Made by a program: the position numbers and the translations under genes | Shown: positions 31,901 through 62,662 of the stretch, one piece after another | How the letters are laid out: every line of letters starts with the position of its first letter | Position numbering within the stretch: the first letter of the stretch is position 1 | The notes under the pieces: model-generated | Databases searched by the model: none | The model's input: only the letters and a program-made list of their open reading frames with translations | What the model was told of the DNA's origin: nothing | NCBI GenBank assembly: GCA_002269645.1 | Contig: NIVC01000461.1 | Coordinates: 525,377-589,376 of the forward strand | DNA length: 64,000 nucleotides | Reading direction: 5' to 3' | Source: Macrostomum lignano | Taxonomy: Eukaryota

Positions 31901-34900
31901 CAACAACAGTACATTAGAATCGCCATCAACAACAACAACACATTAGAATCGCCATCAACAACAGTACATCAGAATCGCCATCAACAACAACACATTAGAA
32001 TCGCCCATCAACAACAACACATTAGAATCGCCCATCAACAACAGTAAATCAGAATCGCTCATCAACAACAGCACATTAGAATCGCTCATTAACAACAGTA
32101 CATCAGAATCGCTCATCAGCAGTACATCAGAATCGCTTATCAACAACAGCACATTAGAATCGCCCATCAACAACAACACATTAGAATCGCCCTCAACAAC
32201 AGTACATTAGAATCGCCATCAACAACAACAACACATTAGAATCGCCGTCAACAACAGCACATTAGAATCGCCATCAACAACAGTACATCAGAATCGCTCA
32301 TGAGCAGCACATCAGAATCGCTCATGAGCAGTACATCAGAATCGCTCATCAGCAGTACATCAGAATCGCTTATCAACAACAGCACATTAGAATCGCCATC
32401 AACAACAGCACATTAGAATCGCCGTCAGCAACAGCACATTAGAATCGCCATCAACAACAGCAAATTAGAATCGCCATCAACAACAGCACATTAGAATCGC
32501 CATCAACAACAGTACATCGGAATTGCCCCTCAACAAGAGTACATCAGAATCGCTCATCAACAACAGCACATTAGAATCGCCATCAACAACAACAACACAT
32601 TAGAATCGCCCTCAACAACAGCACATTAGAATCGCCATCAACAACAACACATTAGAATCGCCGTCAACAATAGCACATTAGAATCGCTCATCAACAACAG
32701 TAAATCAGAATCGCTCATCAACAACAGCACATTAGAATCGCCCATCAACAACAACACATTAGAATCGCCATCAACAACAGTACATCAGAATCGCCATCAA
32801 CAACAACACATTAGAATCGCCCATCAACAGCAACACATTAGAATCGCCCATCAACAACAACACATTAGCATCGCCCTCAACAACAGTACATTAGAATCGC
32901 CATCAACAACAACAACACATTAGAATCGCCATCAACAACAGTACATCAGAATCGCCATCAACAACAACACATAAGAATCGCCGTCAACAATAGCACATTA
33001 GAATCGCTCATCAACAACAGTAAATCAGAATCGCTCATCAACAACAGCACATTAGAATCGCCCATCAACAACAACACATTAGAATCGCCCTCAACAACAG
33101 CACATTAGAATCGCCATCAACAACAACACATTAGAATCGCCGTCAACAATAGCACATTAGAATCGCTCATCAACAACAGTAAATCAGAATCGCTCATCAA
33201 CAACAGCACATTAGAATCGCCCATCAACAACAACACATTAGAATCGCCCTCAACAACAGCACATTAGAATCGCCATCAACAACAACAACACATTAGAATC
33301 GCCCTCAACAACAGCACATTAGAATCGCCATCAACAACAACACATTAGAATCGCCGTCAACAATAGCACATTAGAATCGCTCATCAACAACAGTAAATCA
33401 GAATCGCTCATCAACAACAGCACATTAGAATCGCCCATCAACAACAACACATTAGAATCGCCATCAACAACAGTACATCAGAATCGCCATCAACAACAAC
33501 ACATTAGAATCGCCCATCAACAGCAACACATCAGAATCGCCCATCAACAACAACACATTAGCATCGCCCTCAACAACAGTACATTAGAATCGCCATCAAC
33601 AACAACAACACATTAGAATCGCCATCAACAACAGTACATCAGAATCGCCATCAACAACAACACATTAGAATCGCCCATCAACAACAACACATTAGAATCG
33701 CCCATCAACAACAGTAAATCAGAATCGCTCATCAACAACAGCACATTAGAATCGCTCATTAACAACAGTACATCAGAATCGCTCATCAGCAGTACATCAG
33801 AATCGCTTATCAACAACAGCACATTAGAATCGCCCATCAACAACAACACATTAGAATCGCCCTCAACAACAGTACATTAGAATCGCCATCAACAACAACA
33901 ACACATTAGAATCGCCGTCAACAACAGCACATTAGAATCGCCATCAACAACAGTACATCAGAATCGCTCATGAGCAGCACATCAGAATCGCTCATGAGCA
34001 GTACATCAGAATCGCTCATCAGCAGTACATCAGAATCGCTTATCAACAACAGCACATTAGAATCGCCATCAACAACAGCACATTAGAATCGCCGTCAGCA
34101 ACAGCACATTAGAATCGCCATCAACAACAGCAAATTAGAATCGCCATCAACAACAGCACATTAGAATCGCCATCAACAACAGTACATCGGAATTGCCCCT
34201 CAACAAGAGTACATCAGAATCGCTCATCAACAACAGCACATTAGAATCGCCATCAACAACAACAACACATTAGAATCGCCCTCAACAACAGCACATTAGA
34301 ATCGCCATCAACAACAACACATTAGAATCGCCGTCAACAATAGCACATTAGAATCGCTCATCAACAACAGTAAATCAGAATCGCTCATCAACAACAGCAC
34401 ATTAGAATCGCCCATCAACAACAACACATTAGAATCGCCATCAACAACAGTACATCAGAATCGCCATCAACAACAACACATTAGAATCGCCCATCAACAA
34501 CAACACATTAGAATCGCCCATCAACAACAACACATTAGAATCGCCCTCAACAACAGTACATTAGAATCGCCATCAACAACAACAACACATTAGAATCGCC
34601 ATCAACAACAGTACATCAGAATCGCCATCAACAACAACACATTAGAATCGCCCATCAACAACAACACATTAGAATCGCCCATCAACAACAGTAAATCAGA
34701 ATCGCTCATCAACAACAGCTTATTAGAATCGCCATCAACAACAGTACATCAGAATCGCTCATGAGCAGCACATCAGAATCGCTCATGAGCAGTACATCAG
34801 AATCGCTCATCAGCAGTACATCAGAATCGCTTATCAACAACAGCACATTAGAATCGCCATCAACAACAGCACATTAGAATCGCCCATCAGCAACAACACA

Positions 34901-37900
34901 TTAGAATCGCCATCAACAACAGTACATCAGAATCGCCATCAACAACAACACATTAGAATCGCCCATCAACAACAACACATTAGAATCGCCCATCAACAAC
35001 AACACATTAGCATCGCCCTCAACAACAGTACATTAGAATCGCCATCAACAACAACAACACATTAGAATCGCCATCAACAACAGTACATCAGAATCGCCAT
35101 CAACAACAACACATTAGAATCGCCCATCAACAACAACACATTAGAATCGCCCATCAACAACAGTAAATCAGAATCGCTCATCAACAACAGCACATTAGAA
35201 TCGCTCATTAACAACAGTACATCAGAATCGCTCATCAGCAGTACATCAGAATCGCTTATCAACAACAACAACACATTAGAATCGCCCATCAACAACAACA
35301 CATTAGCATCGCCCTCAACAACAGTACATTAGAATCGCCATCAACAACAACAACACATTAGAATCGCCATCAACAACAGTACATCAGAATCGCCATCAAC
35401 AACAACACATTAGAATCGCCCATCAACAACAACACATTAGAATCGCCCATCAACAACAGTAAATCAGAATCGCTCATCAACAACAGCACATTAGAATCGC
35501 TCATTAACAACAGTACATCAGAATCGCTCATCAGCAGTACATCAGAATCGCTTATCAACAACAGCACATTAGAATCGCCCATCAACAACAACACATTAGA
35601 ATCGCCCTCAACAACAGTACATTAGAATCGCCATCAACAACAACAACACATTAGAATCGCCGTCAACAACAGCACATTAGAATCGCCATCAACAACAGTA
35701 CATCAGAATCGCTCATGAGCAGCACATCAGAATCGCTCATGAGCAGTACATCAGAATCGCTCATCAGCAGTACATCAGAATCGCTTATCAACAACAGCAC
35801 ATTAGAATCGCCATCAACAACAGCACATTAGAATCGCCGTCAGCAACAGCACATTAGAATCGCCATCAACAACAGCAAATTAGAATCGCCATCAACAACA
35901 GCACATTAGAATCGCCATCAACAACAGTACATTAGAATCGCCATCAACAAGAGTACATCAGAATCGCTCATCAACAACAGCACATTAGAATCGCCATCAA
36001 CAACAACAACACATTAGAATCGCCCTCAACAACAGCACATTAGAATCGCCATCAACAACAACACATTAGAATCGCCGTCAACAATAGCACATTAGAATCG
36101 CTCATCAACAACAGTAAATCAGAATCGCTCATCAACAACAGCACATTAGAATCGCCCATCAACAACAACACATTAGAATCGCCATCAACAACAGTACATC
36201 AGAATCGCCATCAACAACAACACATTAGAATCGCCCATCAACAGCAACACATTAGAATCGCCCATCAACAACAACACATTAGCATCGCCCTCAACAACAG
36301 TACATTAGAATCGCCATCAACAACAACAACACATTAGAATCGCCATCAACAACAGTACATCAGAATCGCCATCAACAACAACACATAAGAATCGCCGTCA
36401 ACAATAGCACATTAGAATCGCTCATCAACAACAGTAAATCAGAATCGCTCATCAACAACAGCACATTAGAATCGCCCATCAACAACAACACATTAGAATC
36501 GCCCTCAACAACAGCACATTAGAATCGCCATCAACAACAACACATTAGAATCGCCGTCAACAATAGCACATTAGAATCGCTCATCAACAACAGTAAATCA
36601 GAATCGCTCATCAACAACAGCACATTAGAATCGCCCATCAACAACAACACATTAGAATCGCCCTCAACAACAGCACATTAGAATCGCCATCAACAACAAC
36701 ATCACATTAGAATCGCCCTCAACAACAGCACATTAGAATCGCCATCAACAACAACACATTAGAATCGCCGTCAACAATAGCACATTAGAATCGCTCATCA
36801 ACAACAGTAAATCAGAATCGCTCATCAACAACAGCACATTAGAATCGCCCATCAACAACAACACATTAGAATCGCCATCAACAACAGTACATCAGAATCG
36901 CCATCAACAACAACACATTAGAATCGCCCATCAACAGCAACACATCAGAATCGCCCATCAACAACAACACATTAGCATCGCCCTCAACAACAGTACATTA
37001 GAATCGCCATCAACAACAACAACACATTAGAATCGCCATCAACAACAGTACATCAGAATCGCCATTAACAACAACACATTAGAATCGCCCATCAACAACA
37101 ACACATTAGAATCGCCCATCAACAACAGTAAATCAGAATCGCTCATCAACAACAGCACATTAGAATCGCTCATTAACAACAGTACATCAGAATCGCTCAT
37201 CAGCAGTACATCAGAATCGCTTATCAACAACAGCACATTAGAATCGCCCATCAACAACAACACATTAGAATCGCCCTCAACAACAGTACATTAGAATCGC
37301 CATCAACAACAACAACACATTAGAATCGCCGTCAACAACAGCACATTAGAATCGCCATCAACAACAGTACATCAGAATCGCTCATGAGCAGCACATCAGA
37401 ATCGCTCATGAGCAGTACATCAGAATCGCTCATCAGCAGTACATCAGAATCGCTTATCAACAACAGCACATTAGAATCGCCATCAACAACAGCACATTAG
37501 AATCGCCGTCAGCAACAGCACATTAGAATCGCCATCAACAACAGCAAATTAGAATCGCCATCAACAACAGCACATTAGAATCGCCATCAACAACAGTACA
37601 TCGGAATTGCCCCTCAACAAGAGTACATCAGAATCGCTCATCAACAACAGCACATTAGAATCGCCATCAACAACAACAACACATTAGAATCGCCCTCAAC
37701 AACAGCACATTAGAATCGCCATCAACAACAACACATTAGAATCGCCGTCAACAATAGCACATTAGAATCGCTCATCAACAACAGTAAATCAGAATCGCTC
37801 ATCAACAACAGCACATTAGAATCGCCCATCAACAACAACACATTAGAATCGCCATCAACAACAGTACATCAGAATCGCCATCAACAACAACACATTAGAA

Positions 37901-40369
37901 TCGCCCATCAACAACAACACATTAGAATCGCCATCAACAACAACACATTAGAATCGCCCTCAACAACAGTACATTAGAATCGCCATCAACAACAACAACA
38001 CATTAGAATCGCCATCAACAACAGTACATCAGAATCGCCATCAACAACAACACATTAGAATCGCCCATCAACAACAACACATTAGAATCGCCCATCAACA
38101 ACAGTAAATCAGAATCGCTCATCAACAACAGCTTATTAGAATCGCCATCAACAACAGTACATCAGAATCGCTCATGAGCAGCACATCAGAATCGCTCATG
38201 AGCAGTACATCAGAATCGCTCATCAGCAGTACATCAGAATCGCTTATCAACAACAGCACATTAGAATCGCCATCAACAACAGCACATTAGAATCGCCCAT
38301 CAGCAACAACACATTAGAATCGCCATCAACAACAGTACATCAGAATCGCCATCAACAACAACACATTAGAATCGCCCATCAACAACAACACATTAGAATC
38401 GCCCATCAACAACAACACATTAGCATCGCCCTCAACAACAGTACATTAGAATCGCCATCAACAACAACAACACATTAGAATCGCCATCAACAACAGTACA
38501 TCAGAATCGCCATCAACAACAACACATTAGAATCGCCCATCAACAACAACACATTAGAATCGCCCATCAACAACAGTAAATCAGAATCGCTCATCAACAA
38601 CAGCACATTAGAATCGCTCATTAACAACAGTACATCAGAATCGCTCATCAGCAGTACATCAGAATCGCTTATCAACAACAGCACATTAGAATCGCCCATC
38701 AACAACAACACATTAGAATCGCCCTCAACAACAGTACATTAGAATCGCCATCAACAACAACAACACATTAGAATCGCCGTCAACAACAGCACATTAGAAT
38801 CGCCATCAACAACAGTACATCAGAATCGCTCATGAGCAGCACATCAGAATCGCTCATGAGCAGTACATCAGAATCGCTCATCAGCAGTACATCAGAATCG
38901 CTTATCAACAACAGCACATTAGAATCGCCATCAACAACAGCACATTAGAATCGCCGTCAGCAACAGCACATTAGAATCGCCATCAACAACAGCAAATTAG
39001 AATCGCCATCAACAACAGCACATTAGAATCGCCATCAACAACAGTACATCGGAATTGCCCCTCAACAAGAGTACATCAGAATCGCTCATCAACAACAGCA
39101 CATTAGAATCGCCATCAACAACAACAACACATTAGAATCGCCCTCAACAACAGCACATTAGAATCGCCATCAACAACAACACATTAGAATCGCCGTCAAC
39201 AATAGCACATTAGAATCGCTCATCAACAACAGTAAATCAGAATCGCTCATCAACAACAGCACATTAGAATCGCCCATCAACAACAACACATTAGAATCGC
39301 CATCAACAACAGTACATCAGAATCGCCATCAACAACAACACATTAGAATCGCCCATCAACAACAACACATTAGAATCGCCCATCAACAACAACACATTAG
39401 AATCGCCCTCAACAACAGTACATTAGAATCGCCATCAACAACAACAACACATTAGAATCGCCATCAACAACAGTACATCAGAATCGCCATCAACAACAAC
39501 ACATTAGAATCGCCCATCAACAACAACACATTAGAATCGCCCATCAACAACAGTAAATCAGAATCGCTCATCAACAACAGCACATTAGAATCGCCATCAA
39601 CAACAGTACATCAGAATCGCTCATGAGCAGCACATCAGAATCGCTCATGAGCAGTACATCAGAATCGCTCATCAGCAGTACATCAGAATCGCTTATCAAC
39701 AACAGCACATTAGAATCGCCATCAACAACAGCACATTAGAATCGCCGTCAGCAACAGCACATTAGAATCGCCATCAACAACAGCAAATTAGAATCGCCAT
39801 CAACAACAACACATTAGAATCGCCCTCAACAACAGCACATTAGAATCGCCATCAACAACAACAACACATTAGAATCGCCGTCAACAACAGCACATTAGAA
39901 TCGCCGTCAACAACAGCACATTAGAATCGCCATCAACAACAGTACATCAGAATCGCTCATGAGCAGCACATCAGAATCGCTCATTAACAACAGTACATCA
40001 GAATCGCTCAACAACAGTACATCAGAATCGCTCATGAGCAGCACATCAGAATCGCTCATCAACAACAGCACATTAGAATCGCCCATCAACAACAGTAAAT
40101 CAGAATCGCTCATCAACAACAGCACATTAGAATCGCCATCAACAACAGTACATCAGAATCGCTCATGAGCAGCACATCAGAATCGCTCATTAACAACAGT
40201 ACATCAGAATCGCTCATCAGCAGTACATCAGAATCGCTCATCAACAACAGCACATTAGAATCGCCCATCAACAACAGTAAATCAGAATCGCTCATCAACA
40301 ACAGCACATTAGAATCGCCCATCAACAACAGTACATCAGAATCGCTCATCAGCAGCACATCAGAATCGC
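28933..40369. repeat. 11.4-kb satellite; 24-29 bp monomers (GCCATCAACAACAGCACATTAGAATC) with higher-order periods of about 240 bp and 3.41 kb
   Basis: Monomers directly visible; diagnostic variants recur at 3413-3415 bp spacing. Confidence 0.97.
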
Positions 40370-42261: not shown

Positions 42262-45235
42262 TCAACAGATGTCGTGCCACTGGTGCACCGTGCTGGGCTG
42301 GTTCCGGAAACAGTCGCTCCACTGGGCTGCCCCGCTGCCTCCGGCGACGCTCACCGGCCCGATGACCGCCCGGCCGAGGAGGCGGGCGCCGACCATGGCC
42401 ATGCGGGTGCGGGCGCAGGCTACCACCATGAGGTAGGTCTCGCCGTCATCCTGAGCGCCCGGCGCCACTCGGAACCGGAACTCCTGGTTGATAGTAGACA
42501 GCTCGGCTGAGCTCGATAGCTTCAACGGCGGGCCTTTGCGCGACTTCTTTTTGCGCTCTTGGCGCATCAGGCTGACTCGGAATTGCACTGAGACTGTTGG
42601 CGATAGAGGCGGGGTGGGTTAATCGATGTTTTGTTAAACCTGTTGCTTAATATAATGGACATTTTTCTTAGAAATAAGCTTTCGAGGAATCGAATTTCTC
42701 TCGACCGAATCTTTCTATGGCAAAACTCCATTCAGCGCCATCCATGCGGTCTTGAGAGCACGCTAAATGCGACAAATATCCGTTCCTTACCGGCCTAGGA
42801 ACCATGGACAGCTAAAAAACCTTCTGGACTTCCCATTTGCAAATGAACGAAGCGTGCATTTTGTCCGAGATGATCCGAGTCTCTTTAGCTAATGCTTTAA
42901 AATGCTAAAAAGCCAGCGAAATGTGGACCATTTGCAAGTGCAGAGGCTCCTACCTCGTCTGAGGATCTGAGATAAAAAACACACATCTGCCTAGTGCTCG
43001 TACTTCTTCCAGTCAGACAGTCAGTTACCTGACCTGTGTAGATGAAGTATGTTAGCTTTTTACCTGTGCCTGCTGACTGCTCACAATGAGCACAATGCCC
43101 GGATTTGGGACCGGCTCAACGAGAGCTCTCTCTCTCTCTCTCTGCCTCTCAATAAAAGTCATCACTAAGCCTGCATATTAGCCTGGGCAGGCCCTGGGAT
43201 CGGGAAGGGACTCACCGTCAGTGTCTTTCACTCGGAGGTCGCGGCACTCGAGTAGGCCAACGGTGAGCAGGCGCTGCTTCTGGCTGTAGGCCAGCGAGGC
43301 GTGCAGGCGGCTGGGAGGCTGGCCCGGCCGGCTCTGCGGAGGCGGAGGGGGGAGGCGGTTGCGCGAAGCTGCATGTAAAGACAGAAAGAGCAGACTAAAT
43401 GGCTGCCCATGCAGTCCAAGCCAGCTAAGGGGCTTTGGGTGTGGCCAAATATGGAGCCGAGCGAGACCCCATGGCTGCACTTCTAATAAACTATTTAGTC
43501 TGGGGCCAACTCAAAGTTAATGAGGAAGTGAGTAAACACGATACCAAGAGGGTTGTCGACAGTGCAATTTGATGGAGCATTGGGCTCGTTATCGTTTACT
43601 CTAGCGTCTATAGCAACCGACATCTTGATTAACTGCGCTATTGGAGTCAAGGTCATTAATCAGTTAGGCGATGCGATCTTATTAGCTAACTCGGTTCGAA
43701 GTCAGAGATCCATCAAAGTTTGCGCGCACTGTTTGTGAAAAAGTACAAACTGGACCTCTTCGAAGCGAGACTGGACTTCTTCTAAACAAGACTGGATCTC
43801 TTGTAAAACAAGACTTGACCTCTTCTAAAACAAGACTGGACCTCTTCTAAACAAGACTGGACCTCTTGTAAAACAGGACTGGACCTCTTCGAAGCGATAC
43901 TGGACCTCTTCGAAGCGATACTGGACCTCTTCGAAGCGAAACTGGACCTCTTCTAAAACAAGACTGGACCTCTTCGAAGCGAGACTGGACCTCTTCTAAA
44001 CAGGACTGGACCTCTTCGAAGCGATACTGGACCTCTTCGAAGCGATACTGGACCTCTTCGAAGCGAAACTGGACCTCTTCTAAACAGGACTGGACCTCTT
44101 CGAAGCGAGACTGGACCTCTTCTAAACAGGACTGGACCTCTTCGAAGCGAGACTGGGACGGCCCCAATAGCCTAACCTTAGTAGATATGCACCTTGTCAA
44201 AGAGCATCTCAGCGGAACTCTCCAAACGCATCAACTCACAGCCAACTCGCTCGGTGGAGTTTGCAGGTCGCGCCAGAACTCGTGACCGCCGGCGCCCAGC
44301 TTCAGAAGCGGAGCCGCCGGGATGCTGCACACGCCCAACAGCTGCGACTTGCCGCGGAAGCTGGTCGCCCGCTCCTTGACGCGAAAGACGAGCAACAGGT
44401 CGCGCGCCGCCTCCTCGCTGTCGCAGTGCAGCACAAAGCGACGCTCAAGAAATTTCGGATTGCAGGCGGCGCTCACAAGCTGGGTCCGGTGCTTACCGCC
44501 GTCCGGGCCGGCTCTGAATGACACGTAGAAGAAGCTCACGTTGCCAGGCAACCGGCTCATCAGGTGGCGCGCCTCCAGCACAGTCACGGCCAGCCGGCCG
44601 CCTGACTCCATCTCCAGCCGGACGCACAGCCGGCCAAGCGAGGTCTCGTGGCGAGCCGAGCCGCAGTCCGAGTCGGCGCTTTCGGCGCCACGGTACAGGT
44701 TGACGTCGATGCCGAACTCCTCCAGCAGCGAGGCTGTTGTGTCGGCGTCTCTGCTGGATGACCCGGACTGCGGTAGCTGCTGCTGGTCCTGCACGTCGCC
44801 CTGACTCCGGGCTCGCTGGCGTCGAAGATAGTCAACGGCGCCGCCAGCGCGGCTTCGGGACGGCTGGCCGCTTGACGGCTCCTCTACGGAGGTGCCGCTG
44901 CCGATTCGTCGGCCGCCTCGGGTGGTGAAGGTCCGGTAGCTGGCCGGCTGCTGCAGCGGCACGGCGATACCTCCGCGGGTCTCGTCGACCGTGCGGGCCG
45001 ACATCCAAGCGAAGCAGCAGTTGCTGTCACGCCGACTGTCGCTGCTGCTGCTGCTGCCACCGCCGCCACTGCTGCAGCTGCTGTTGTCGCTGCTGAAGAT
45101 GCTCCGGCGGAAGGTTTTGGCTTTTTGCTGCTTCCGCCTGCGCCACAGCCAGAAGCCGGCGGCGGTGGCAGCAGCCGCAGCGACGCAGACCGCTGCCACA
45201 CCGGCCGCCAGAATGGCCGCCTCGGCTGCCTGCAT
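42262..45235 (-). CDS. Atypical synaptotagmin-like protein (N-terminal TM, C2A, C2B), 481 aa, 3 exons
   Basis: complement(join(42262..42593,43216..43333,44240..45235)) = 1446 nt, GT-AG and frame-consistent. Hydrophobic N-terminus followed by WRRRKQQK; C2A GRLCVRL..RLAVTVLEARHL..NPKF; C2B RLHASLAY..LLTVGLLECRDL..INQEFRFRV..LLGRAVIG..QWH. Confidence 0.82.
43745..44155. repeat. 21-bp minisatellite (CTGGACCTCTTCGAAGCGAGA), about 19 copies, synaptotagmin intron 1
   Basis: Tandem units directly visible. Confidence 0.92.
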
Positions 45236-46964: not shown

Positions 46965-47675
46965 AGTGCATGGCCAGTGAGCAATGTGGCTCTTTGTTGT
47001 GGTCTGATATACTGTACATGTAGCTAAAGTGGCCAGTGAGCAATGTGGCTCTTTGTTGTGGTCTGATACATGTAGCTTAAGTCGCCAGTGAGCAATGTGG
47101 CTCTTTGTTGTGGTCTGATACATGTAGCTTAAGTCGCCAGTGAGCAATGTGGCTCTTTGTTGTGGTCTGATACATGTAGCTTAAGTCGCCAGTGAGCAAT
47201 GTGGCTCTTTGTTGTGGTCTGATACATGTAGCTTAAGTCGCCAGTGAGCAATGTGGCTCTTTGTTGTGGTCTGATACATGTAGCTTAAGTCGCCAGTGAG
47301 CAATGTGGCTCTTTGTTGTGGTCTGATATGGTACATGTAGCTTAAGTCGCCAGTGAGCAATGTGGCTCTTTGTTGTGGTCTGATATACTGTACATGTAGC
47401 TAAAGTGGCCAGTGAGCAATGTGGCTCTTTGTTGTGGTCTGATACATGTAGCTTAAGTCGCCAGTGAGCAATGTGGCTCTTTGTTGTGGTCTGATACATG
47501 TAGCTTAAGTCGCCAGTGAGCAATGTGGCTCTTTGTTGTGGTCTGATACATGTAGCTTAAGTCGCCAGTGAGCAATGTGGCTCTTTGTTGTGGTCTGATA
47601 CATGTAGCTTAAGTCGCCAGTGAGCAATGTGGCTCTTTGTTGTGGTCTGATACATGTAGCTTAAGTCGCCAGTGG
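46965..47675. repeat. 52-bp minisatellite (GCCAGTGAGCAATGTGGCTCTTTGTTGTGGTCTGATACATGTAGCTTAAGTC), about 13 copies
   Basis: Period 52 measured between 47101 and 47153. Confidence 0.95.
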
Positions 47676-48930: not shown

Positions 48931-49383
48931 CTCAGCAACAGCTAAACCCCCCCCCCCAACTCACGCTGTCACACGGCCCAAAAGTTTTGTATGCCATCGG
49001 TGACTCAGAAATGTGTGAAGGCTGCCGCCGCCAGACGCGAGCGCAAAGTGCGGCATGGGGGATTTGGTGAGGGGGTGGCGCAACTCAAAGTCTCCAGACA
49101 TGAACCCCATCGAGCATGTCTGGGACTTTGTAAAGCGAAGAGTTCAGCAGGATGCCCCACAGAATGCTGAACAGTTGCGACTGGCGGTGCTGAATGCCTG
49201 GCAGCAGCTGCCCCAAGAGTTCATCAACCGGCTGGTGATCAGGATGCCACGACGAGTCACGGCACTTTTGCATGCTCGTGGTTCCTACACACGATACTGA
49301 GACTAGAATTAAAGACATTGCTTAACTTTTGTGCCCGTGTGACAGCGTGAGTTGGGGGGGGGGGGGGGTTAGCTGTTGCTGAG
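48931..49383 (+). mobile_element. 453-bp internally deleted Tc1-like element
   Basis: TA-flanked TIRs of about 50 bp (CTCAGCAACAGCTAA-polyC-AACTCACGCTGTCACACGG); retains the transposase C-terminus SPDMNPIEHVWD...AWQQLPQEFINRLVIRMPRRVTALLHARGSYTRY (49055-49300). Confidence 0.88.
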
Positions 49384-49521
49384 TATATAAGAATTTCCCG
49401 CAGCGATGTTTTCCCGCAGCGAGGTTTTCCCGAAGGGTTATTCCAGTCGGAATTTCAAGTCAGATCCAATCGGATTTGAAATCTAGTCTAGTCCAGTTCT
49501 AATCTAGTATAGTTTTTAATC

Positions 49522-49771
49522 GCACGCGAAGGTGTATTCAGCACGCCAGTGAAGTATGAGACAGACCAGGCCTAAGGGCTACGGTCTGCGATGCTTCACG
49601 CCTGCCCCTATATTCAGCAGGTCAAGGCTGGAGAGGGAGGTCTGCACCCGCTATTTGCCACTGGCAGCCGCAGACCCCCCCCTCACGCTGTTTCACAAGT
49701 CGACCCAGGGTACTCGTCCCCGCGTGTGTTCAAGGCAGACCCTAGGGCTGCTGGACAGACTGGGCTCCGAC
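49522..49771 (+). ncRNA. Predicted HDV-like self-cleaving ribozyme at the retrotransposon 5' end
   Basis: P1 GCACGCG 49522-28 / CGCGTGT 49721-27 with G1-U wobble; P2 GACCCA 49702-07 / TGGG(C)TC 49761-67; P3 GGG / CCC 49708-10 / 49718-20; L3 TACTCGT; P1.1 AC / GT; P4 49730-55; J4/2 CAGAC with candidate catalytic C49756. Predicted cleavage site coincides with the TSD boundary. Confidence 0.8.
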
Positions 49772-49992
49772 GCTGGCGACCCATCCAGTGGCTTCGGCCG
49801 AATTTGGGTATGCGGGTCTGGCTTGCCAGCCTGCAGGCCGTGGTACTGCTTAACGTACCCCCTAATGCCTAAGGTGTTTGACCGTGCCGATGGGCTGGAA
49901 GGCCGGGGGGTTGTCCGGTCGCTAGCGGTCCTTTTCTTTTTCTTCTTTCCTCTTTCTTTTGTGACTCAGCTCACTCCTTCCCGCTTTCAGCT

Positions 49993-51459
49993 ATGGCGTC
50001 ATCCGCCTCTTTAACCCCCGCTGAAGCCGGGGCCCCGGCAACTCCGGCCGGTGACTCTGGCACCAGCGCCGCCCCACCGGGGGCAGATGGGCTTGCCGCC
50101 GGCTCGGCTGGTGACATGCCCGCACGCGCAACCGGGCCCTCCGCTGAAGCCCGACGCACCCGCAACCAACGCCGCAACGAGCGGCGACGGCGACTACGGG
50201 GTACTGCGGGCCGGCCACCGGCGGAAGGGGAACCTAGGGAGGGCGAGGCTGCTGTTGGGCCGAAAGGAACCACAGCAACCCCTGCCCCCCAGGATACAAC
50301 CCCCGCTGGTGAGCCACCCAGTATACCTGCTACAAGCGCGGCCGGGCCTTCGGGAACCGCCGCCACCAACTACGCCTCAAAGGTCAAGCTCCAACCGGCG
50401 GTCATCGTCTTCGGGGAAGAGCAGGACCTCACGGCCGACGAGCTCGACAGTGCCTGGCGCACCATCGATGCTGCGCTCATCGACCAGCTCCTGGCGGGCC
50501 GCCCTGTGAGCGTGGTCAAGTCTGCCAAGACCGACGGCTGCATCTTCATCTGGTGCAGCTCGGAGGAGAGCAGCCGCAATCTACGCGAGCTTCTGCCAAA
50601 GCTGAACTGGCCCAAGAAGCTCGGCAAGCTCGTCTTCGCCAGCGAGGGCGAACGACAGAAGACCCAGCGCTTTCGCGTCTGGATCCCGGCCGGCAGTGCC
50701 ATTAAGTCCGGAGATCAGCTTAGGCAAATATTGCTAAAGCTGCACCCCGACCTTAAGGTCAACGGGCTCCTACACCACGCCACTTCCCGCAAGGAGAAGG
50801 GGGCTACGGTGATCCTAGGGCTCTCTGATGACTGGGCTAAGCGCTTGCCGCCTAAGTCCACAATTCATATTGGTCTGACTCAGCTGACCATCCTCCGTTG
50901 CGAGGAGCGGAAAGCTGATGAAGCCAAGAATGCCAAAGCTTCCGAAACCGGAACTGGGGCCCAGGCTCCTCCGGCAAAGAAGCCGAGGCAAACGGCCGAT
51001 CCTATGCCCGGTAAGGCAGTTCGCGCTGCTGAAACCGGAAATCGCAATCGCAGACCCGCCAGGAGCACCCGGAGGTCCGGCCTGATCCAGCGCGCGCTGG
51101 ACCAGGCCAAGAACCTTCGTGCGCATCGTGAGCGGGCCCGCGCTTCTCGCGCTCCACCCCAACAGCCAGAAGGCCAGACTCTAAGCGGGGAGGCTCCGAC
51201 CGACTGGTTCGAGTCTGTGACTCACCAGGAGGCTGGCGCCACCCGCATCGACCTGACCGACGAGGCAGAGGGGACGGGCAGTGACAGCACCGAAGCACGC
51301 AGGAGAGGCGACGGTAACGTCCACGCTGGGCTCACGTCCGCGGAGGACTCCACAGCCACCCTAACTGCTGAGGACGCTGAAACTCCCATGGAGGTCTGCG
51401 GGTCACCCACCACTGAAAAGGAGGAGGATGACCTGCTCAACGATTCCCCAACTGCGTGA
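49993..51459 (+). CDS. Retrotransposon ORF1p, 488 aa; central domain resembles DUF4780-type ORF1 of LOA/Lian elements
   Basis: ATG at 49993; globular core (IDAALIDQLL..RFRVWIP..VILGL..IHIGL) flanked by low-complexity and basic regions; no CCHC knuckle. Domain name is from recall, not a search. Confidence 0.85.
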   Translation: MASSASLTPAEAGAPATPAGDSGTSAAPPGADGLAAGSAGDMPARATGPSAEARRTRNQRRNERRRRLRGTAGRPPAEGEPREGEAAVGPKGTTATPAPQDTTPAGEPPSIPATSAAGPSGTAATNYASKVKLQPAVIVFGEEQDLTADELDSAWRTIDAALIDQLLAGRPVSVVKSAKTDGCIFIWCSSEESSRNLRELLPKLNWPKKLGKLVFASEGERQKTQRFRVWIPAGSAIKSGDQLRQILLKLHPDLKVNGLLHHATSRKEKGATVILGLSDDWAKRLPPKSTIHIGLTQLTILRCEERKADEAKNAKASETGTGAQAPPAKKPRQTADPMPGKAVRAAETGNRNRRPARSTRRSGLIQRALDQAKNLRAHRERARASRAPPQQPEGQTLSGEAPTDWFESVTHQEAGATRIDLTDEAEGTGSDSTEARRRGDGNVHAGLTSAEDSTATLTAEDAETPMEVCGSPTTEKEEDDLLNDSPTA

Positions 51460-51461
51460 TA

Positions 51462-54400
51462 ATGATCAGCAACCAGGGAATCCATTGCCTGCAGATTAAT
51501 CTGCAGCACTGCGTCGCAGCCTCGGTCAACCTTATGCGTTACGCCGAGCTCGACAAGCCGGGGCTCATCCTCGTCCAGGAACCCTGGACTCTCAGAGGTA
51601 AGCCTCAAAACGCCCCTGCTGGCTACAATTGTTTTTATACTTACCCTCGCGAGGCCAACCAGCCTCCCAGAGCTTGCATCTTTGCGAGCAAAACGCTCAG
51701 TGCGTGGCTCAGATCGGACCTGTCCAACAGGGACATCTGCGTCATCCAATCCGAGGACCTTCTTCCTGGGAAGACCACCCTCATTGCCTCGGTTTACCTA
51801 CCAGGCGATGCTGCGGTCGTCCCCAGAGCCCTCGCTACGCTGGTAGAGCTCTGCTCTGCCAAAAACTACGAGCTCATGGTTGCCGGCGACATCAACGCCC
51901 ACCACACTCACTGGGGCAGCACTGGCATTAATCAGAGAGGCGAAGACCTCCTAGCCTACGTTGCCTCTACGACCCTCGAGTTCTGCAACTCTGGGTCCAC
52001 CCCTACCTTTGACAACGGACGGTGGTCGGAGGTGATCGACGCTACGCTCGCAACGCCCAGACTCTACCAGAGTATTGGGGCGTGGCGGGTGCTTCCAGTG
52101 TCCTCACTATCGGATCACAAGTTCATCTCCTTCAACCTAATGGCCGCGCGTAGCGCAACTCGTGTTATGTGGAGACGGAACGCCAGAAATACGGATTGGG
52201 AAACCTTCGGGCTCGCCCTGAAGGAATTCCATCGGTCTCCTGGCCAACCATCCACGATCACGTCGTGCCGAGAGGCGGATGAGTGCGCGACTGTTTTGAC
52301 AGAGACGCTAACCGCCGCCTTTGAGGCGTCCTGCCCTTTAAAAGCCTATAAAGGGAAAAAATCGGCGCCGTGGTGGAATCCCGAGCTCGGCAACCTCCGT
52401 CGCAGGGCTAAGAGACTCCACCGCAGAGCAACTAAAACTAAGAGCCCTGCAGACCAAACCGCCTATCATGAAGCAATTCATGAGTTTAAAAGGCAGGTTA
52501 GGAATGCAAAGGCTCAAAAATGGCGACAATACTGTGAGGAGCTAGAGGGCTCACGCCCCACCTCCAGAGTTGTGAAAGCGCTCACGCTGGACAAAATGTC
52601 TAAGCTCTCCTCGGTCAAACGCACCGACGGTACGTCCACGGACAACCCAGGGGAAACGCTTGATGTAATGCTCACTGCGTTTTTCCCTAACGAGCCAGCT
52701 AACCAGACCACTCCGGATCACTCGGAGGGAGGTCACGCGCTGGCTGCATCTATCATCACGGAGGACCGCATTGTGAGAGCGGCAAATTCCTTCAAGCCTT
52801 TCAAAGCCCCAGGACCCGACGGCATTGTACCGGCCCTTCTAAGAGAGGCGGTTAAATGCCCAGGCTTCCTGCGCAAACTTTGCAGCCTTCTTCGGGCATG
52901 CATCACGCTTGGTTATGTCCCGCAGGCATGGACCGAGGCAAAGGTGATCTTTATCCCTAAGCCAGGCCGCCCGGACTACCATTCTATCAAATCCTTCAGA
53001 CCGATCAGCTTGACCTCCTCCCTGGTCAAGCTGATGGAGAGACTGGTGCTTTGGCGCCTTCTCTCTGTTGAGCTGAAGAACAAACCTCTCAGCGAGAACC
53101 AGCACGCTTTTCGGGCGGGTCGCTCCACTGAAAGCGCGCTGCACGTCCTGGTCGATAAACTCGAGAAGGCCGTGCTTGGTAGTGGCTTTGCTCTGGGGAT
53201 CTTCCTGGACATCATTGGCGCCTTCGATAACGTCCTCTTTGAGGCGTTCCGAAGAGCTCTTTGTGAGAGGCTAACGCACTCACATCTCACCAGATGGATC
53301 ATGTACATGATCAGCCATCGCACGGCCACCGCCAGTCTGCTGGGCTACCAGAGGACGGTCCCCGTCTGCAAAGGTAGCCCGCAAGGTGGGGTGCTGTCTC
53401 CAGTTCTCTGGAATATGGTCATTGATGAGCTCCTCCGGGATGTTCGGCCTGACCCCATTCTGAAAGTTGGATATGCGGACGATGTCACCGCGGTGGCATC
53501 TGGTCCGTCCCCTGATACCCTCAGGGACCTTCTTCAGAACTTCATCTACGCTGCTGAGCAATGGGCGGACCGCTGTGGTTTAAGGCTCTCTGAGACTAAG
53601 ACCGCAGCGATCATGTTCACCAGCAGGACCAAGTGGCAGATTCGGCCGCTCACGCTTTACGGAAGGGAAATCCCCTTCTGCAAGCAGACTAAATGTCTGG
53701 GTATTACCCTGGACCACAGGCTGAACTGGTCTCCCCACGTTCAAACAAAAGCCAAAAAGGCCTTCGCAGTCCTCGCGCAATTGCGCAGGGCCGTCGGCAC
53801 CACCTGGGGGCTCACCCCCAAGCGCCTCTGGTGGATCTACACTGCAATGGTTAGGCCCGCTATCTCGTATGGCGGCCTGATCTGGGCTAGCGCCCTGCAG
53901 ATAAAGACCTGTCTAGAGGCTCTCAGGAGAGCGCAAGGGCGCGCTTGTCGCACGATCATGAGCGCCCCTCCGTCTGCTCCTTACGATGGCCTCAACGCCT
54001 TCCTCAACATTCCTCCGCTGGACATCTTTGTCCGCAGGGAAGCGGCTAAGACTGCCCGCCGTCTAGCTGACGCTGGCATTCGAATCCAGCCCCATAGGGC
54101 CATGGCTAAGCGCAAGCTTCTGCCCCACGCTGACCTCTGCCTCAAGGACTTGAGAGACAGCGGCGGGCTCCACGTCCTATCTGACGGCGAACCCCGCACT
54201 CTCAACCTCTTTCAGCGCTACAAGGTCACCATCCCCTCTAGGGATGCTGCCAATGACCACTGGAATTTCCAGGAGGTCCATTGCTACACGGACGGATCCA
54301 TCAAAGACGGTCGCGCCGGCTTTGGGGTCTGCATTATCATCAACGGCCGCGTAATTGCCACGCATGCCCAGCACACTGGTAGACTCTCCACAGTCTTCCA

Positions 54401-55166
54401 GAACGAAGTCCTTGCCATCAGCTCTTGCGCTGCAGAGCTAAACGCCAAGGTTACGAGAGGAAAGACTATTGTCATCCACTCCGACAGCCAAGCGGCCTTA
54501 CAGGCCCTTTGCCACACCACAACGAACTCCCGGACAGTCGCCGACTGCGCCCGGCAGCTCAACCTCCTGGCCAGAAGCAATACTGTCAGGCTGAAGTGGA
54601 TCCCAGGGCACGCAGGGTTTCCGGGGAACGAGCTGGCAGACACCCTCGCCAAGAGGGGCGGCTCTGGCTCTTTTTTCGGCCCTGCCCCCCTGGTCCCTAT
54701 GCCCTTGACAGTCATCAATCGTCAGATCGACGACTGGGCTGACTCCCTCCACAGGGACAGATGGGCGGGCACCCAAAACTGCCGGCAATCTCGTGCCGCG
54801 GTTCCTTGCCCGTCTCACAGGCTCAGAAACATCCTTCTGAACCAGAATCGGAAGGATATTCGAGCCCTTGTCATGACCCTTACCGGCCATGGCTACCTCG
54901 CCAGGCACTGCTTCCTCCGAGGCGACCTCGAGAGCGAAATTTGCCCCTTTTGCGAGTGCGACAATGAAGATGCTCAGCACTTTGTCTGTCACTGCCCTTT
55001 CTTTAACAGAGACCGGCTACGCTACCTCGGGCCGAACCCGTCCATTGACGAGGTTTGCCAGCCCGACAGCATCCCACGGCTCATCCAGTTCCTTCGGGCG
55101 ACTAGACGAGCCAGTTTCTTCCCAACGGAAGATCACGCTGCAGGACGGACCGGCGGACCACCCTGA
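51462..55166 (+). CDS. Retrotransposon ORF2p: APE endonuclease, reverse transcriptase, RNase H, C-terminal zinc finger (about 1234 aa)
   Basis: APE: QINLQH, LVQEPW, GDINAHH, SDHK. RT: KAPGPDGI, FRPISL, PQGGVLSP, YADD. RNase H: YTDGS, QNE, SDSQA, WIPGHAGFPGNELAD. Zinc finger CPFCECDNEDAQHFVCHC. First ATG at 51462. Confidence 0.95.
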   Translation: MISNQGIHCLQINLQHCVAASVNLMRYAELDKPGLILVQEPWTLRGKPQNAPAGYNCFYTYPREANQPPRACIFASKTLSAWLRSDLSNRDICVIQSEDLLPGKTTLIASVYLPGDAAVVPRALATLVELCSAKNYELMVAGDINAHHTHWGSTGINQRGEDLLAYVASTTLEFCNSGSTPTFDNGRWSEVIDATLATPRLYQSIGAWRVLPVSSLSDHKFISFNLMAARSATRVMWRRNARNTDWETFGLALKEFHRSPGQPSTITSCREADECATVLTETLTAAFEASCPLKAYKGKKSAPWWNPELGNLRRRAKRLHRRATKTKSPADQTAYHEAIHEFKRQVRNAKAQKWRQYCEELEGSRPTSRVVKALTLDKMSKLSSVKRTDGTSTDNPGETLDVMLTAFFPNEPANQTTPDHSEGGHALAASIITEDRIVRAANSFKPFKAPGPDGIVPALLREAVKCPGFLRKLCSLLRACITLGYVPQAWTEAKVIFIPKPGRPDYHSIKSFRPISLTSSLVKLMERLVLWRLLSVELKNKPLSENQHAFRAGRSTESALHVLVDKLEKAVLGSGFALGIFLDIIGAFDNVLFEAFRRALCERLTHSHLTRWIMYMISHRTATASLLGYQRTVPVCKGSPQGGVLSPVLWNMVIDELLRDVRPDPILKVGYADDVTAVASGPSPDTLRDLLQNFIYAAEQWADRCGLRLSETKTAAIMFTSRTKWQIRPLTLYGREIPFCKQTKCLGITLDHRLNWSPHVQTKAKKAFAVLAQLRRAVGTTWGLTPKRLWWIYTAMVRPAISYGGLIWASALQIKTCLEALRRAQGRACRTIMSAPPSAPYDGLNAFLNIPPLDIFVRREAAKTARRLADAGIRIQPHRAMAKRKLLPHADLCLKDLRDSGGLHVLSDGEPRTLNLFQRYKVTIPSRDAANDHWNFQEVHCYTDGSIKDGRAGFGVCIIINGRVIATHAQHTGRLSTVFQNEVLAISSCAAELNAKVTRGKTIVIHSDSQAALQALCHTTTNSRTVADCARQLNLLARSNTVRLKWIPGHAGFPGNELADTLAKRGGSGSFFGPAPLVPMPLTVINRQIDDWADSLHRDRWAGTQNCRQSRAAVPCPSHRLRNILLNQNRKDIRALVMTLTGHGYLARHCFLRGDLESEICPFCECDNEDAQHFVCHCPFFNRDRLRYLGPNPSIDEVCQPDSIPRLIQFLRATRRASFFPTEDHAAGRTGGPP

Positions 55167-55298
55167 CCGGCCCCACGCCTCTGCCTGTCTGCGGGCCTTC
55201 AGGGGCTAGCGGAATGGGCGACCCTCGCCTCCCCGCTGTGTCTACGGACCACCCTGCAGCTAAGTCAAGCTAAGTCAAGTAAGTCATAGTTTTTAATC

Positions 55299-55330
55299 TA
55301 GTCTAGTCTAGTCTAGTCTAGTCTAGTCCA
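55299..55330. repeat. (CTAGT)n microsatellite, continuing on the left of the element at about 49482-49508
   Basis: TAGTC repeated about 6 times right of the TSD; degenerate CTAGT copies left of the TSD. Confidence 0.85.
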
Positions 55331-61333: not shown

Positions 61334-62662
61334 CGAGGGGCACCCAAAAAGTTTTAGCAATTAGTCAACTATTAAAAAACAGTAACTGCAAAGAACAACT
61401 GAACATGTTACAATCCTTCAATGTAGTCTCCCCCTCTCTCAATGCACTTTTGGTGCCGCCGAATCCATGCTTCAAATGCACCATGGTACTCAGAAGCAGG
61501 TATGGCCTTAAGCTCTGAATTGATGCACTTAGCCAGGTCTTGGCATTGGTGAAAATTCTGTCCTGCCAGCCATTTAGTCAGCTTGGTGAACACCCAGAAG
61601 TCGCAAGGAACCAAGTGAAGACTGTAGGGTGGGTGGCAGATGGTCTTGATGTTGTTGGCTGCCAGAAAGTTGGTTGTCAGGGCCGCTGTGTGACTGGATG
61701 CATTGTCATGGTGCAGGTGAACTTGCCCAGCTTGAAGCCATGAGGGCTGAGTTGCATGAAGTGACGCCATGAATTGTGGCAGAACCGTACTGAAGTAGAA
61801 GTTGGCATTCACATTCTGTCCATTAGGCACCATGATGATGGCCCAGGGCCCAGATGTGCTGATGAAGACAACAAAAATCTCCTTCTGGGACCGAAAGCTG
61901 GACTGCAGGACAGTCAGCCTCACGTCTCCAGAGCCCACCCAGGCCTTGTTCTGCATCTTCTGGGACACTTGAAAATAAAAAAACCATTTCTCATCACCTG
62001 TAACAACGTCAGAAAGCCTCTGGCTGCCTCCTGGACCAAAGTTGCGCAGGAGTTCCTGGCTGCACTGCACCCTCTCCCTTTTCTGCTCTTCTGTCAGGAG
62101 GTGGGGCACCCAGCTGGCGGTGACCTTGCGGAGGCCCAGGTGGCTATGCAGGATGGTGTGCGTACTGCCATTGGAAATACCGATAGTCTCGCTAATCACA
62201 GAGATGGTAATGTTTGGATCCTCGTCCACCAGAGCCCTGACAGCAGCGATGTTGGCTTCGGTCACAGCTGTGCTAGGTCGTCCAGATTGGGGGTCGTCGT
62301 TCAAGGAGGCCCGTCCAGCGTTGATGGACTCTATCTACCGGGTGACCGTGCGATAGGAAATGGCTTGGTCCCCGACTACCTGACCAGGTCTGCATGGATT
62401 TTGACCACGCTTTCTCCAAGTTGTGAGCACATGAAAATGTAGAATTGCTACTGGTCTGGTTGCATTGGCTCCATTTTCGGCAGAGTGTAAAACACCACCT
62501 TGCATTGGCCATGCACAAGTATAACACATTCGAGGGAAAAAAGTCATGCTCTGTGGTTGAAACCAATATATGTCTGCAATTTAGTAAAAAAAATTCAACG
62601 CTTTATGATATGTACTTTTGGAGATATTAGGTCAGTTGCCAAAACTTTTTGAATGCCCCTTG
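61334..62662 (-). mobile_element. 1329-bp decayed mariner element
   Basis: TA-flanked imperfect 33-bp TIRs (CGAGGGGCACCCAAAAAGTTTTAGCAA / CAAGGGGCATTCAAAAAGTTTTGGCAA). Confidence 0.92.
61408..62440 (-). pseudogene. Mariner D,D34D transposase pseudogene
   Basis: ORF 61408-62304 has WVPHLLT, TGDEKW, HHDNASSH and YSLHLVPCDF (normally YSPDLAP.D); the N-terminal HTH is broken by a frameshift and a TAG stop. Confidence 0.88.

Follow-up and report, generated by a model that had tools for sequence, protein, structure and literature searches.

What determines the 5' end of a full-length long interspersed nuclear element (LINE)? The question is raised by a locus of the flatworm Macrostomum lignano, situated in a stretch of 64,000 nucleotides (assembly GCA_002269645.1, contig NIVC01000461.1, positions 525,377 to 589,376 of the forward strand); this whole stretch is referred to here as the window, and coordinates count from its first base. 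The window contains a retrotransposon without long terminal repeats (non-LTR), 5.76 kb in length, which runs on the + strand from 49522 to about 55286 and in which both reading frames are open. G49522 is the first base of the element: it directly follows a perfect target-site duplication (TSD), with no untemplated bases, the TSD being an identical 12-mer, TAGTTTTTAATC, found at 49510-49521 and 55287-55298, which an ambiguous A49509 could extend to 13 bp.

An annotation made earlier from the sequence (the original prediction) had placed a self-cleaving ribozyme of the hepatitis delta virus (HDV) type at this boundary, with its cleavage site at the first base of the retrotransposon. Our analysis supports that core reading, with catalysis predicted from the sequence: we consider it likely that 49522-49771 is a functional HDV-like self-cleaving ribozyme at the 5' terminus of the element. 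Four lines of evidence speak for this reading: the anatomy of the segment, controls for chance matches, the compensatory changes that relatives show and the position of the 5' boundary of the element, which is a young one. If correct, the ribozyme would explain the sharply defined 5' end of full-length copies and could serve annotators as a marker for copies that are full-length and probably active.

Anatomy of the predicted ribozyme

The segment 49522-49771 (+) holds every element of the HDV-like nested double pseudoknot, and all of the coordinates and pairings originally proposed are present in the sequence. From 5' to 3', as paired regions (P), joining segments (J) and loops (L), the features are:

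49522-49528 (+): 5' strand of P1, GCACGCG, pairing with 49721-49727; predicted cleavage 5' of G49522
49529-49698 (+): J1/2 peripheral domain, P1.2-like, with a closing stem 49532-49542 / 49686-49695
49699-49707 (+): 5' strand of P2, made up of the extension GUCG (49699-49702), a bulged A49703 and the proximal CCCA (49704-49707)
49708-49720 (+): P3 and L3, with GGG (49708-49710) pairing to CCC (49718-49720) around L3, UACUCGU (49711-49717)
49721-49727 (+): 3' strand of P1, CGCGUGU, partner of 49522-49528
49728-49729 (+): J1/4, GU, forming P1.1 with A49712 and C49713 of L3
49730-49755 (+): P4 hairpin, with U49730-A49755, C49731-G49754 and a distal stem 49734-49741 / 49746-49752
49756-49760 (+): J4/2, CAGAC, in which C49756, at the first position, is the candidate catalytic cytosine
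49761-49771 (+): 3' strand of P2, made up of UGGG (49761-49764), the loop CUC and the extension CGAC (49768-49771)

P1 is 7 bp in length, ends in a G49522-U49727 wobble and fits the class requirement of 6-7 bp. P2 consists of CCCA/UGGG, a 1x3 internal loop and then GUCG/CGAC, giving 8 bp in two segments, and P1.1 is formed by two pairs, C49713-G49728 and A49712-U49729. The 7-nt L3 fits the pattern U-N-N-N-C-G-N; the U and G that had been assigned to it are both at the reverse-wobble positions, and both are kept in 3/3 of the sequences compared below. Likewise, the CNRA(N) pattern claimed for J4/2 is borne out, since CAGAC in the window copy matches C-N-R-A. A G1-U wobble closing P1 is a common, not a universal, feature of such ribozymes, and P4 is variable and dispensable; self-scission in the class is site-specific and dependent on Mg2+, leaves 5'-OH and 2',3'-cyclic phosphate ends and is lost once the catalytic C becomes U. 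In HDV-like ribozymes the first position of J4/2 is the catalytic C (PMC10879173), the reverse wobble involves the U and the G of L3 (PMC3774820), and a P1.1 of one or two pairs is normal (PMC4908430). When the whole 250 nt were folded with RNAfold, which is free of pseudoknots, the fold contained P3, P4, the J1/2 domain and both segments of P2, as would be expected of a structure in which P1 crosses P2.

J1/2 measures 170 nt to the extended P2 and 175 nt to the proximal P2, which brackets the length of about 173 nt first given for it. On its own it folds as a closed, branched domain (minimum free energy -72.1 kcal/mol, z = -4.0) with hairpins inside the closing stem at 49549-49599, 49600-49622 and 49631-49683, and the J1/2 hairpins listed in the original prediction are those of this minimum-free-energy fold. 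The description of J1/2 as unusually long did not hold up: the J1/2 loops of silkmoth R2 ribozymes are 216-498 nt in length, and part of the loop is needed for activity (PMC3774820).

Relatives, chance and rival readings

Comparison of further copies, which had been put forward as a check, was made with two close relatives. L001 is a Logan contig (run ERR14788467) with an ORF2 61% identical to that of the window element (ORF, open reading frame), and L004 is a metagenome contig from the Joint Genome Institute (JGI) with an ORF1 62-66% identical, starting within J1/2. Searches for homologues of ORF1, with a single sequence and with a profile, returned P0078 alone; a scan of metagenome contigs with the ORF1 profile found no relative, look-ups of the exact products of the window ORF1 and ORF2 gave no match, and BLASTN of the three 5' untranslated regions (5'UTRs) against 84 loci gave no further alignable relative. 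The contigs P0006 and P0008 end within ORF1.

The window copy, L001 and L004 were aligned with MAFFT on sequence only, and the alignment was scored on the structure derived from the window. Standard pairs were formed in 86.8% of alignment cells, as opposed to 37-43% when the 3' partners were slid by 1-3 columns; 20 pairs had changed on both sides, as opposed to 1-6 when slid, and the observed pairing values were reached in 0/500 shuffles. Covariation from three sequences, scored on a structure taken from one of them, amounts to good support and not to statistical proof, and it indicates that the fold is kept in both relatives by way of compensatory changes. In L001, P1 is a 6-bp helix, GCCUGC/GCAGGC, in place of GCACGCG/CGCGUGU, with two compensatory pairs, and both pairs of P1.1 are compensatory (AC with GU in the window, CU with AG in L001). 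One compensatory pair is found in the proximal P2 of the relatives (C-G to U-A), one in the P2 extension (U-A to C-G) and five in the closing stem of J1/2, with further ones in the J1/2 hairpins; the J1/2 of L001 has the same fold architecture as the window copy. P3 is invariant in 3/3 sequences, and L3 reads U-N-N-Y-C-G-U in 3/3 (UCUCCGU in L001, UUCUCGU in L004). The C at the first position of J4/2 is kept in L004 and L001. Hairpins of other sequence occupy the position of P4 in both relatives; its foot, UC/GA in the window, was read by hand as UU/AA in L004 and GC/GC in L001, the MAFFT columns leaving L001 unpaired there.

P2 totals 8 bp in the window and 10 bp in L001 and L004. The proximal P2 has 4 bp in the window (49704-49707/49761-49764) as compared to 6 bp in the relatives (L004 89-94/147-152), so that both of its strands appear to have been shortened together in the window copy.

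A more distant set of 80 loci, with ORF2 30-39% identical, was obtained by running a profile of ORF2 over metagenome contigs. The 5' regions of these loci are not alignable to the window, and they were searched for the canonical L3 pattern together with a P2 of at least 6 bp. On the sense strand, the 98 kb that precede ORF2 in these loci contained 6 matches to this canonical motif, as opposed to 0 in a 509-kb control made up of the antisense of the regions upstream of ORF2 and both strands of the remainder. The candidates sit upstream of ORF1, at the 5' ends of RNase-H-bearing LINEs, and those described individually are:

L006 2666-2875, the same locus as L042 135-344: P1 G7/C7; J1/2 133 nt; P2 8 bp; L3 UCUACGU; J1/4 AG; J4/2 CUGA
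L061 706-945: P1 GGGCGCG/CGCGCCC; J1/2 152 nt; P2 8 bp; L3 UCCACGU; J1/4 GG; J4/2 CGAA
L047 177-287: a compact candidate, with J1/2 of 2 nt; J4/2 CUAA
L044: among the canonical sense-strand matches
L009 157 onward: a relative of L061 with an altered L3, matching under a looser pattern only

The predicted ribozyme is thus inherited with the element lineage, being present in L001 and L004 and represented by canonical motifs in distant loci. Three observations place the predicted cleavage site at the first base of full-length insertions: the end of the TSD in the window, the start of the L001 contig, which begins exactly at the G that starts its P1, and the start of similarity between L061 and L009, which are alike from the predicted G1 on and unrelated upstream. 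The start of the L001 contig fits a processed or initiated RNA 5' end, and it would also fit an assembly that broke off where a repeat ends. At its other end, this contig continues for about 530 nt beyond the 3' tail (5954-6492), into sequence with antisense ORFs.

Could the motif be a chance match of a permissive descriptor in GC-rich sequence? Our strict descriptor, which was of our own design, demanded a P1 of 6-7 bp starting from G, J1/2 of at most 300 nt, a P2 of 4 bp or more, a G+C-rich P3 of 3 bp, an L3 matching U...CG., one or more pairs in P1.1, a paired P4 base and a C starting J4/2. A descriptor search had also been proposed with the original prediction; across both strands of the window (128 kb) ours gave a single match, with G1 at 49522 and C at 49756, falling exactly on the boundary defined by the TSD. 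It gave one match in L001, and only two, mutually identical and antisense, in the remaining 83 related loci (about 1.1 Mb, both strands). Dinucleotide-shuffled element sequence gave 93 matches per 17.3 Mb, and it speaks for chance that loose descriptors match shuffled GC-rich sequence at this rate of about 5 per Mb; a 7-bp P1 together with a 2-bp P1.1 occurred in only 7/93 of these shuffle matches. Among shuffled 5'UTRs, 29/20,000 contained a match of any kind and 0/20,000 a match starting at base 1, all these counts being indicative and not formal probabilities, as the tolerances of the descriptor were fixed after the sequence had been seen. Decoys with A, G or U instead of the catalytic C gave no discrimination, the J4/2 tolerance of the descriptor being loose, and with a looser L3 pattern or with mismatches in P1 its specificity was lost entirely. 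The lack of an Rfam match would also suit a chance origin, against which stand the position of the single match, the shuffled 5'UTRs and the compensatory changes in the relatives; we regard chance as a barely tenable explanation.

A different objection is that the conserved 5'UTR module serves some other function, as an internal promoter on the DNA, an internal ribosome entry site (IRES) or a binding site for proteins of the element, that transcription starts at G49522 and that the likeness to HDV is non-catalytic or a relic. An internal promoter with its +1 position at G1 would account for the 5' end equally well, and many LINEs have such promoters; the 77 nt of L1Tc are both promoter and ribozyme (PMC3383444); the relatives have kept neither the G1-U wobble nor the J4/2 bases that follow the C; and the remaining 5'UTR is conserved as well. 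A promoter or an IRES does not, however, predict the topology seen here, in which the first base is paired 200 nt downstream, right after a 3-bp P3 with a U...CG. loop, nor does it predict that the P1.1 and P2 pseudoknots should covary and that J4/2 should open with a C, nor a canonical motif upstream of ORF1 in distant relatives that cannot be aligned (6 matches as opposed to 0). We therefore hold this explanation to be improbable and favor a self-cleaving ribozyme.

Several observations, besides the late fixing of the descriptor tolerances, weigh against the ribozyme reading. Just two close relatives with a 5'UTR were found, one of which, L004, is without the 5' strand of P1, and the covariation was scored on a structure that had been derived from the window copy. 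In L001, L006 and L061 the G1-U wobble is replaced by G1-C; the P1.1 of L004 has one Watson-Crick pair, C-G, plus a U.U mismatch; and J4/2 varies beyond its C (CAGAC in the window, CGUG in L004, CUGC in L001). Nor was there a canonical match on the sense strand of L085 or L086, two further distant relatives of full length, from which it follows that the motif is frequent in the group and either not universal or not always canonical. Rfam covariance models, at the gathering threshold and at E <= 10, gave no HDV-family match over the region, the only matches being chance microRNA-like ones on the J1/2 hairpins. Self-cleavage, co-transcription and roles in translation are, moreover, what we infer from the fold, its conservation and the boundary. 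As to the differences among the relatives in J4/2, the G1 pair and P1.1, R2 ribozymes keep little apart from the catalytic C and a handful of further positions (PMC3774820), and P1.1 occurs with one pair or with two (PMC4908430), so that these differences lie within the known range; some of the relatives' ribozymes could still be weak or inactive. The Rfam models are unable to encode pseudoknots or a 170-nt insert, and their null result says little because the compact L047 candidate is missed by them too.

The J1/2 of the distant candidates ranges from 2 to 193 nt, and each large J1/2 has a closing helix within a few nt of P1 and P2. A branched, helix-closed J1/2 of 130-190 nt might be no neutral insert and instead a conserved functional module of the whole RNase-H-bearing LINE lineage, in flatworms and in the animals sampled in metagenomes; we put this forward tentatively and think it rather unlikely. 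If it were true, J1/2 might be an obligatory folding "pinch," a 5' binding site for element protein or a translation platform for uncapped cleaved RNA, and these sequences would form a distinct large subclass of HDV-like ribozymes, ancestral in the lineage.

The element, its expression and its surroundings

The remaining features of the element and its flanks are:

49510-49521: 5' copy of the TSD, TAGTTTTTAATC, with the identical 12-mer at 55287-55298
49772-49992 (+): remainder of the 5'UTR, which shares conserved blocks with L001 and L004
49993-51459 (+): ORF1, 488 aa, open; weak, sub-threshold match to DUF4780
51462-55166 (+): ORF2, counted from its first ATG as 1234 aa; domains for APE endonuclease, reverse transcriptase and RNase H, followed at the C terminus by a CCHC motif
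55167-55286 (+): 3'UTR and a tail of CTAAGTCAAG repeats; the 3' block and the tail motif are also found in L001
55287-55298: 3' copy of the TSD, identical 12-mer TAGTTTTTAATC

The element had been called an intact retrotransposon with an exactly defined 5' end, and both descriptions are accurate: ORF1 and ORF2 are open, ORF2 has its full set of domains, and the TSD ends at 49521 with G49522 next. Since both ORFs are open with full domains, the ribozyme sequence probably represents a master copy that is active. The element is found only once in the 64-kb window; among named protein matches (UniRef) the best are M. lignano entries, with identity of up to 98%, which points to this flatworm or one closely akin to it as the host.

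ORF2 matches the Pfam families Exo_endo_phos, RVT_1 and RNase_H, and in the alignment the C-C-H-C columns of its C-terminal motif are invariant. An ORF2 with APE, reverse transcriptase and RNase H is common to the I, Nimb, Ingi, Tad1 and other clades. The order APE, reverse transcriptase, RNase H, CCHC fits LOA and equally other clades of the I group, so that the LOA/Lian-like label given to the element is not diagnosed by it; the named protein matches are generic, and a literature search found no paper classifying the LINEs of M. lignano. ORF1 matches no Pfam family above threshold, the match to DUF4780 being weak (E = 0.02). DUF4780 is found in ORF1 of the distant relatives L085 (1619-3400) and L086 (930-2633), and the matches of the window and L004 ORF1 to it are weak (E about 0.02); from this, the ORF1 of the lineage is probably of a DUF4780-like type.

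The 5'UTR is 471 nt long. One of the blocks conserved in L001 and L004 in its part 3' of the ribozyme is a CCGGGG..UCCGG hairpin near 49903-49920, and the conserved stretch 49772-49992 may be a second structured module, perhaps serving translation. The stop of ORF1 and the start of ORF2 form UGAUAAUG (51457-51464), the ATG of ORF2 at 51462 lying 2 nt past the ORF1 stop, and in L004 the two ORFs overlap by 4 nt; this arrangement suggests that ORF2 is translated through termination and reinitiation.

How might the predicted ribozyme act in the life of the element? The element would be transcribed within a longer RNA, or from any upstream start, and the 170-nt J1/2 would fold first, as a closed multi-branch module that keeps P1 next to the extended P2. 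Once about 250 nt had been transcribed, C49756 and bound Mg2+ would cleave the bond 5' of G49522, giving an element RNA that has a 5'-OH, starts at G1 and retains the ribozyme. Full-length target-primed reverse transcription of the cleaved RNA could then give rise to new copies beginning at G1; the window copy, which begins at G1 right after the TSD, agrees with full reverse transcription of such an RNA. The uncapped RNA would be translated in a cap-independent manner, with ORF2 read by restart at UGAUAAUG. HDV-like ribozymes are reported to promote translation initiation, without need of a cap, in other elements (PMC6765202, in its account of Ruminski 2011), and the element in the window may be a further case.

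The ribozyme might also be one part of a dual system like L1Tc Pr77, active in cleavage and accompanied by an internal promoter or translation element, in which case cleavage would matter only for read-through transcripts. There is precedent for such a system (PMC3383444, PMC3185411), the reported effect of HDV-like ribozymes on translation initiation would suit it, and so would an insertion into a repeat-rich region with no obvious upstream gene on the same strand. We see the dual system as possible, if doubtful, and keep to a self-cleaving ribozyme that releases the element from longer transcripts as the preferred account. In the window no upstream gene was recognized on the strand of the element, and the region is rich in repeats.

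The insertion lies inside a (TAGTC)n-type microsatellite (49480-49509 and 55299-55330), and a run of about 18 G is located upstream of the element (49353-49370). The window is unusually repeat-rich as a whole. An 11.4-kb satellite at 28944-40369 consists of about 433 copies of a 26-bp unit, with 85% matches, and its two strands differ very strongly in composition (a GC skew of about -0.45 and an AT skew of about +0.43). Minisatellite arrays with periods of 14-170 bp are found at 1864-2486, 3994-5512, 15918-16656 and 19616-20216, and further arrays at 21155-22136, 23825-24043, 43745-44156 and 46973-47674. Antisense to the element lie an ORF of 334 aa that carries a C2 domain and may be a host exon (44231-45235, - strand) and the remnant of a DDE_3 transposase (61408-62304, - strand).

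Comparison with known HDV-like ribozymes

The ribozymes of R2 elements were reportedly described by Eickbush and Eickbush in 2010, and Baggins, from Drosophila, is a member of the LOA clade, the one originally proposed for the element in the window. HDV-like ribozymes at the 5' terminus have been published, according to PMC3774820 and PMC6765202 and their summary of Ruminski et al. 2011, for R2, R4/Dong, RTE, Baggins and L1Tc. An R2 ribozyme has been predicted in the planarian Schmidtea mediterranea (PMC3774820), and, taken with the long J1/2 of the silkmoth and with Baggins, this means that the phylum, the long J1/2 and, if the assignment to LOA holds, the clade are not unprecedented. The original suggestion that a case in this host lineage and with this J1/2 may be undescribed was therefore too strong as regards the phylum and a J1/2 of such length (216-498 nt being on record). 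For the genus, our literature search found no paper linking ribozymes with Macrostomum, nor any report of a ribozyme for the RNase-H-bearing LINE lineage of this element. The locus would add a convincing HDV-like ribozyme to that lineage and to M. lignano, a laboratory flatworm amenable to transgenesis.

Among the closest parallels are the ribozymes of Baggins, RTE (the drz-Agam-2 family), R4 and L1Tc. In the accounts of these given by the sources just named, as in the element described here, the ribozyme is at the extreme 5' end, cleavage is predicted at the first base of the element, no upstream sequence is required and release from co-transcripts is presumed. The present case differs in that its host is a macrostomid flatworm and in that no sequence similarity to described ribozymes was found, the Rfam search included.

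With the R2 ribozymes it shares the double pseudoknot, a P1 of 6-7 bp, a P2 of at least 5 bp, a variable P4 and a variable J4/2 in which the C and few other bases are fixed, as well as a large J1/2 and a flatworm phylum already represented (PMC3774820). R2 differs in being specific to ribosomal DNA, with a single ORF and a restriction-like endonuclease, and its ribozyme often cleaves upstream, within the 28S sequence. The element in the window, by contrast, combines an endonuclease of the APE type with RNase H, lacks site specificity and has its predicted cleavage at its own first base.

In drz-Agam-2-1 a structured J1/2 together with an extended P2 activates the ribozyme, cleavage being up to about 1000-fold faster, and the "pinch" model drawn from it involves, as here, a large structured J1/2 (P1.2) closed by a helix and an extended P2 (PMC4908430). 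The J1/2 of drz-Agam-2-1 is one long helix, whereas that of the M. lignano element is a branched domain of about 170 nt, which may or may not affect the rate in a like manner. A natural ribozyme with a large J1/2 and covarying relatives is well suited to tests of this model of peripheral domains.

The mammalian CPEB3 ribozyme has UUCACGU as L3 and GU as J1/4; it is intronic, about 68 nt long and compact, and is not part of a mobile element. Its J1/4 is that of the window copy, and its L3 compares with UACUCGU in the window and UUCUCGU in L004; like L004 it has a single C-G pair in P1.1 plus U.U, and its J4/2 is of the C-N-R-A type, as in the window copy. It differs in its intronic location, its size of about 68 nt and its place outside mobile elements. 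Set beside these systems, the locus is well supported as a new example of a mechanism known from other LINEs and not as a new mechanism, and it leaves the current picture of LINE 5'-end processing unchanged.

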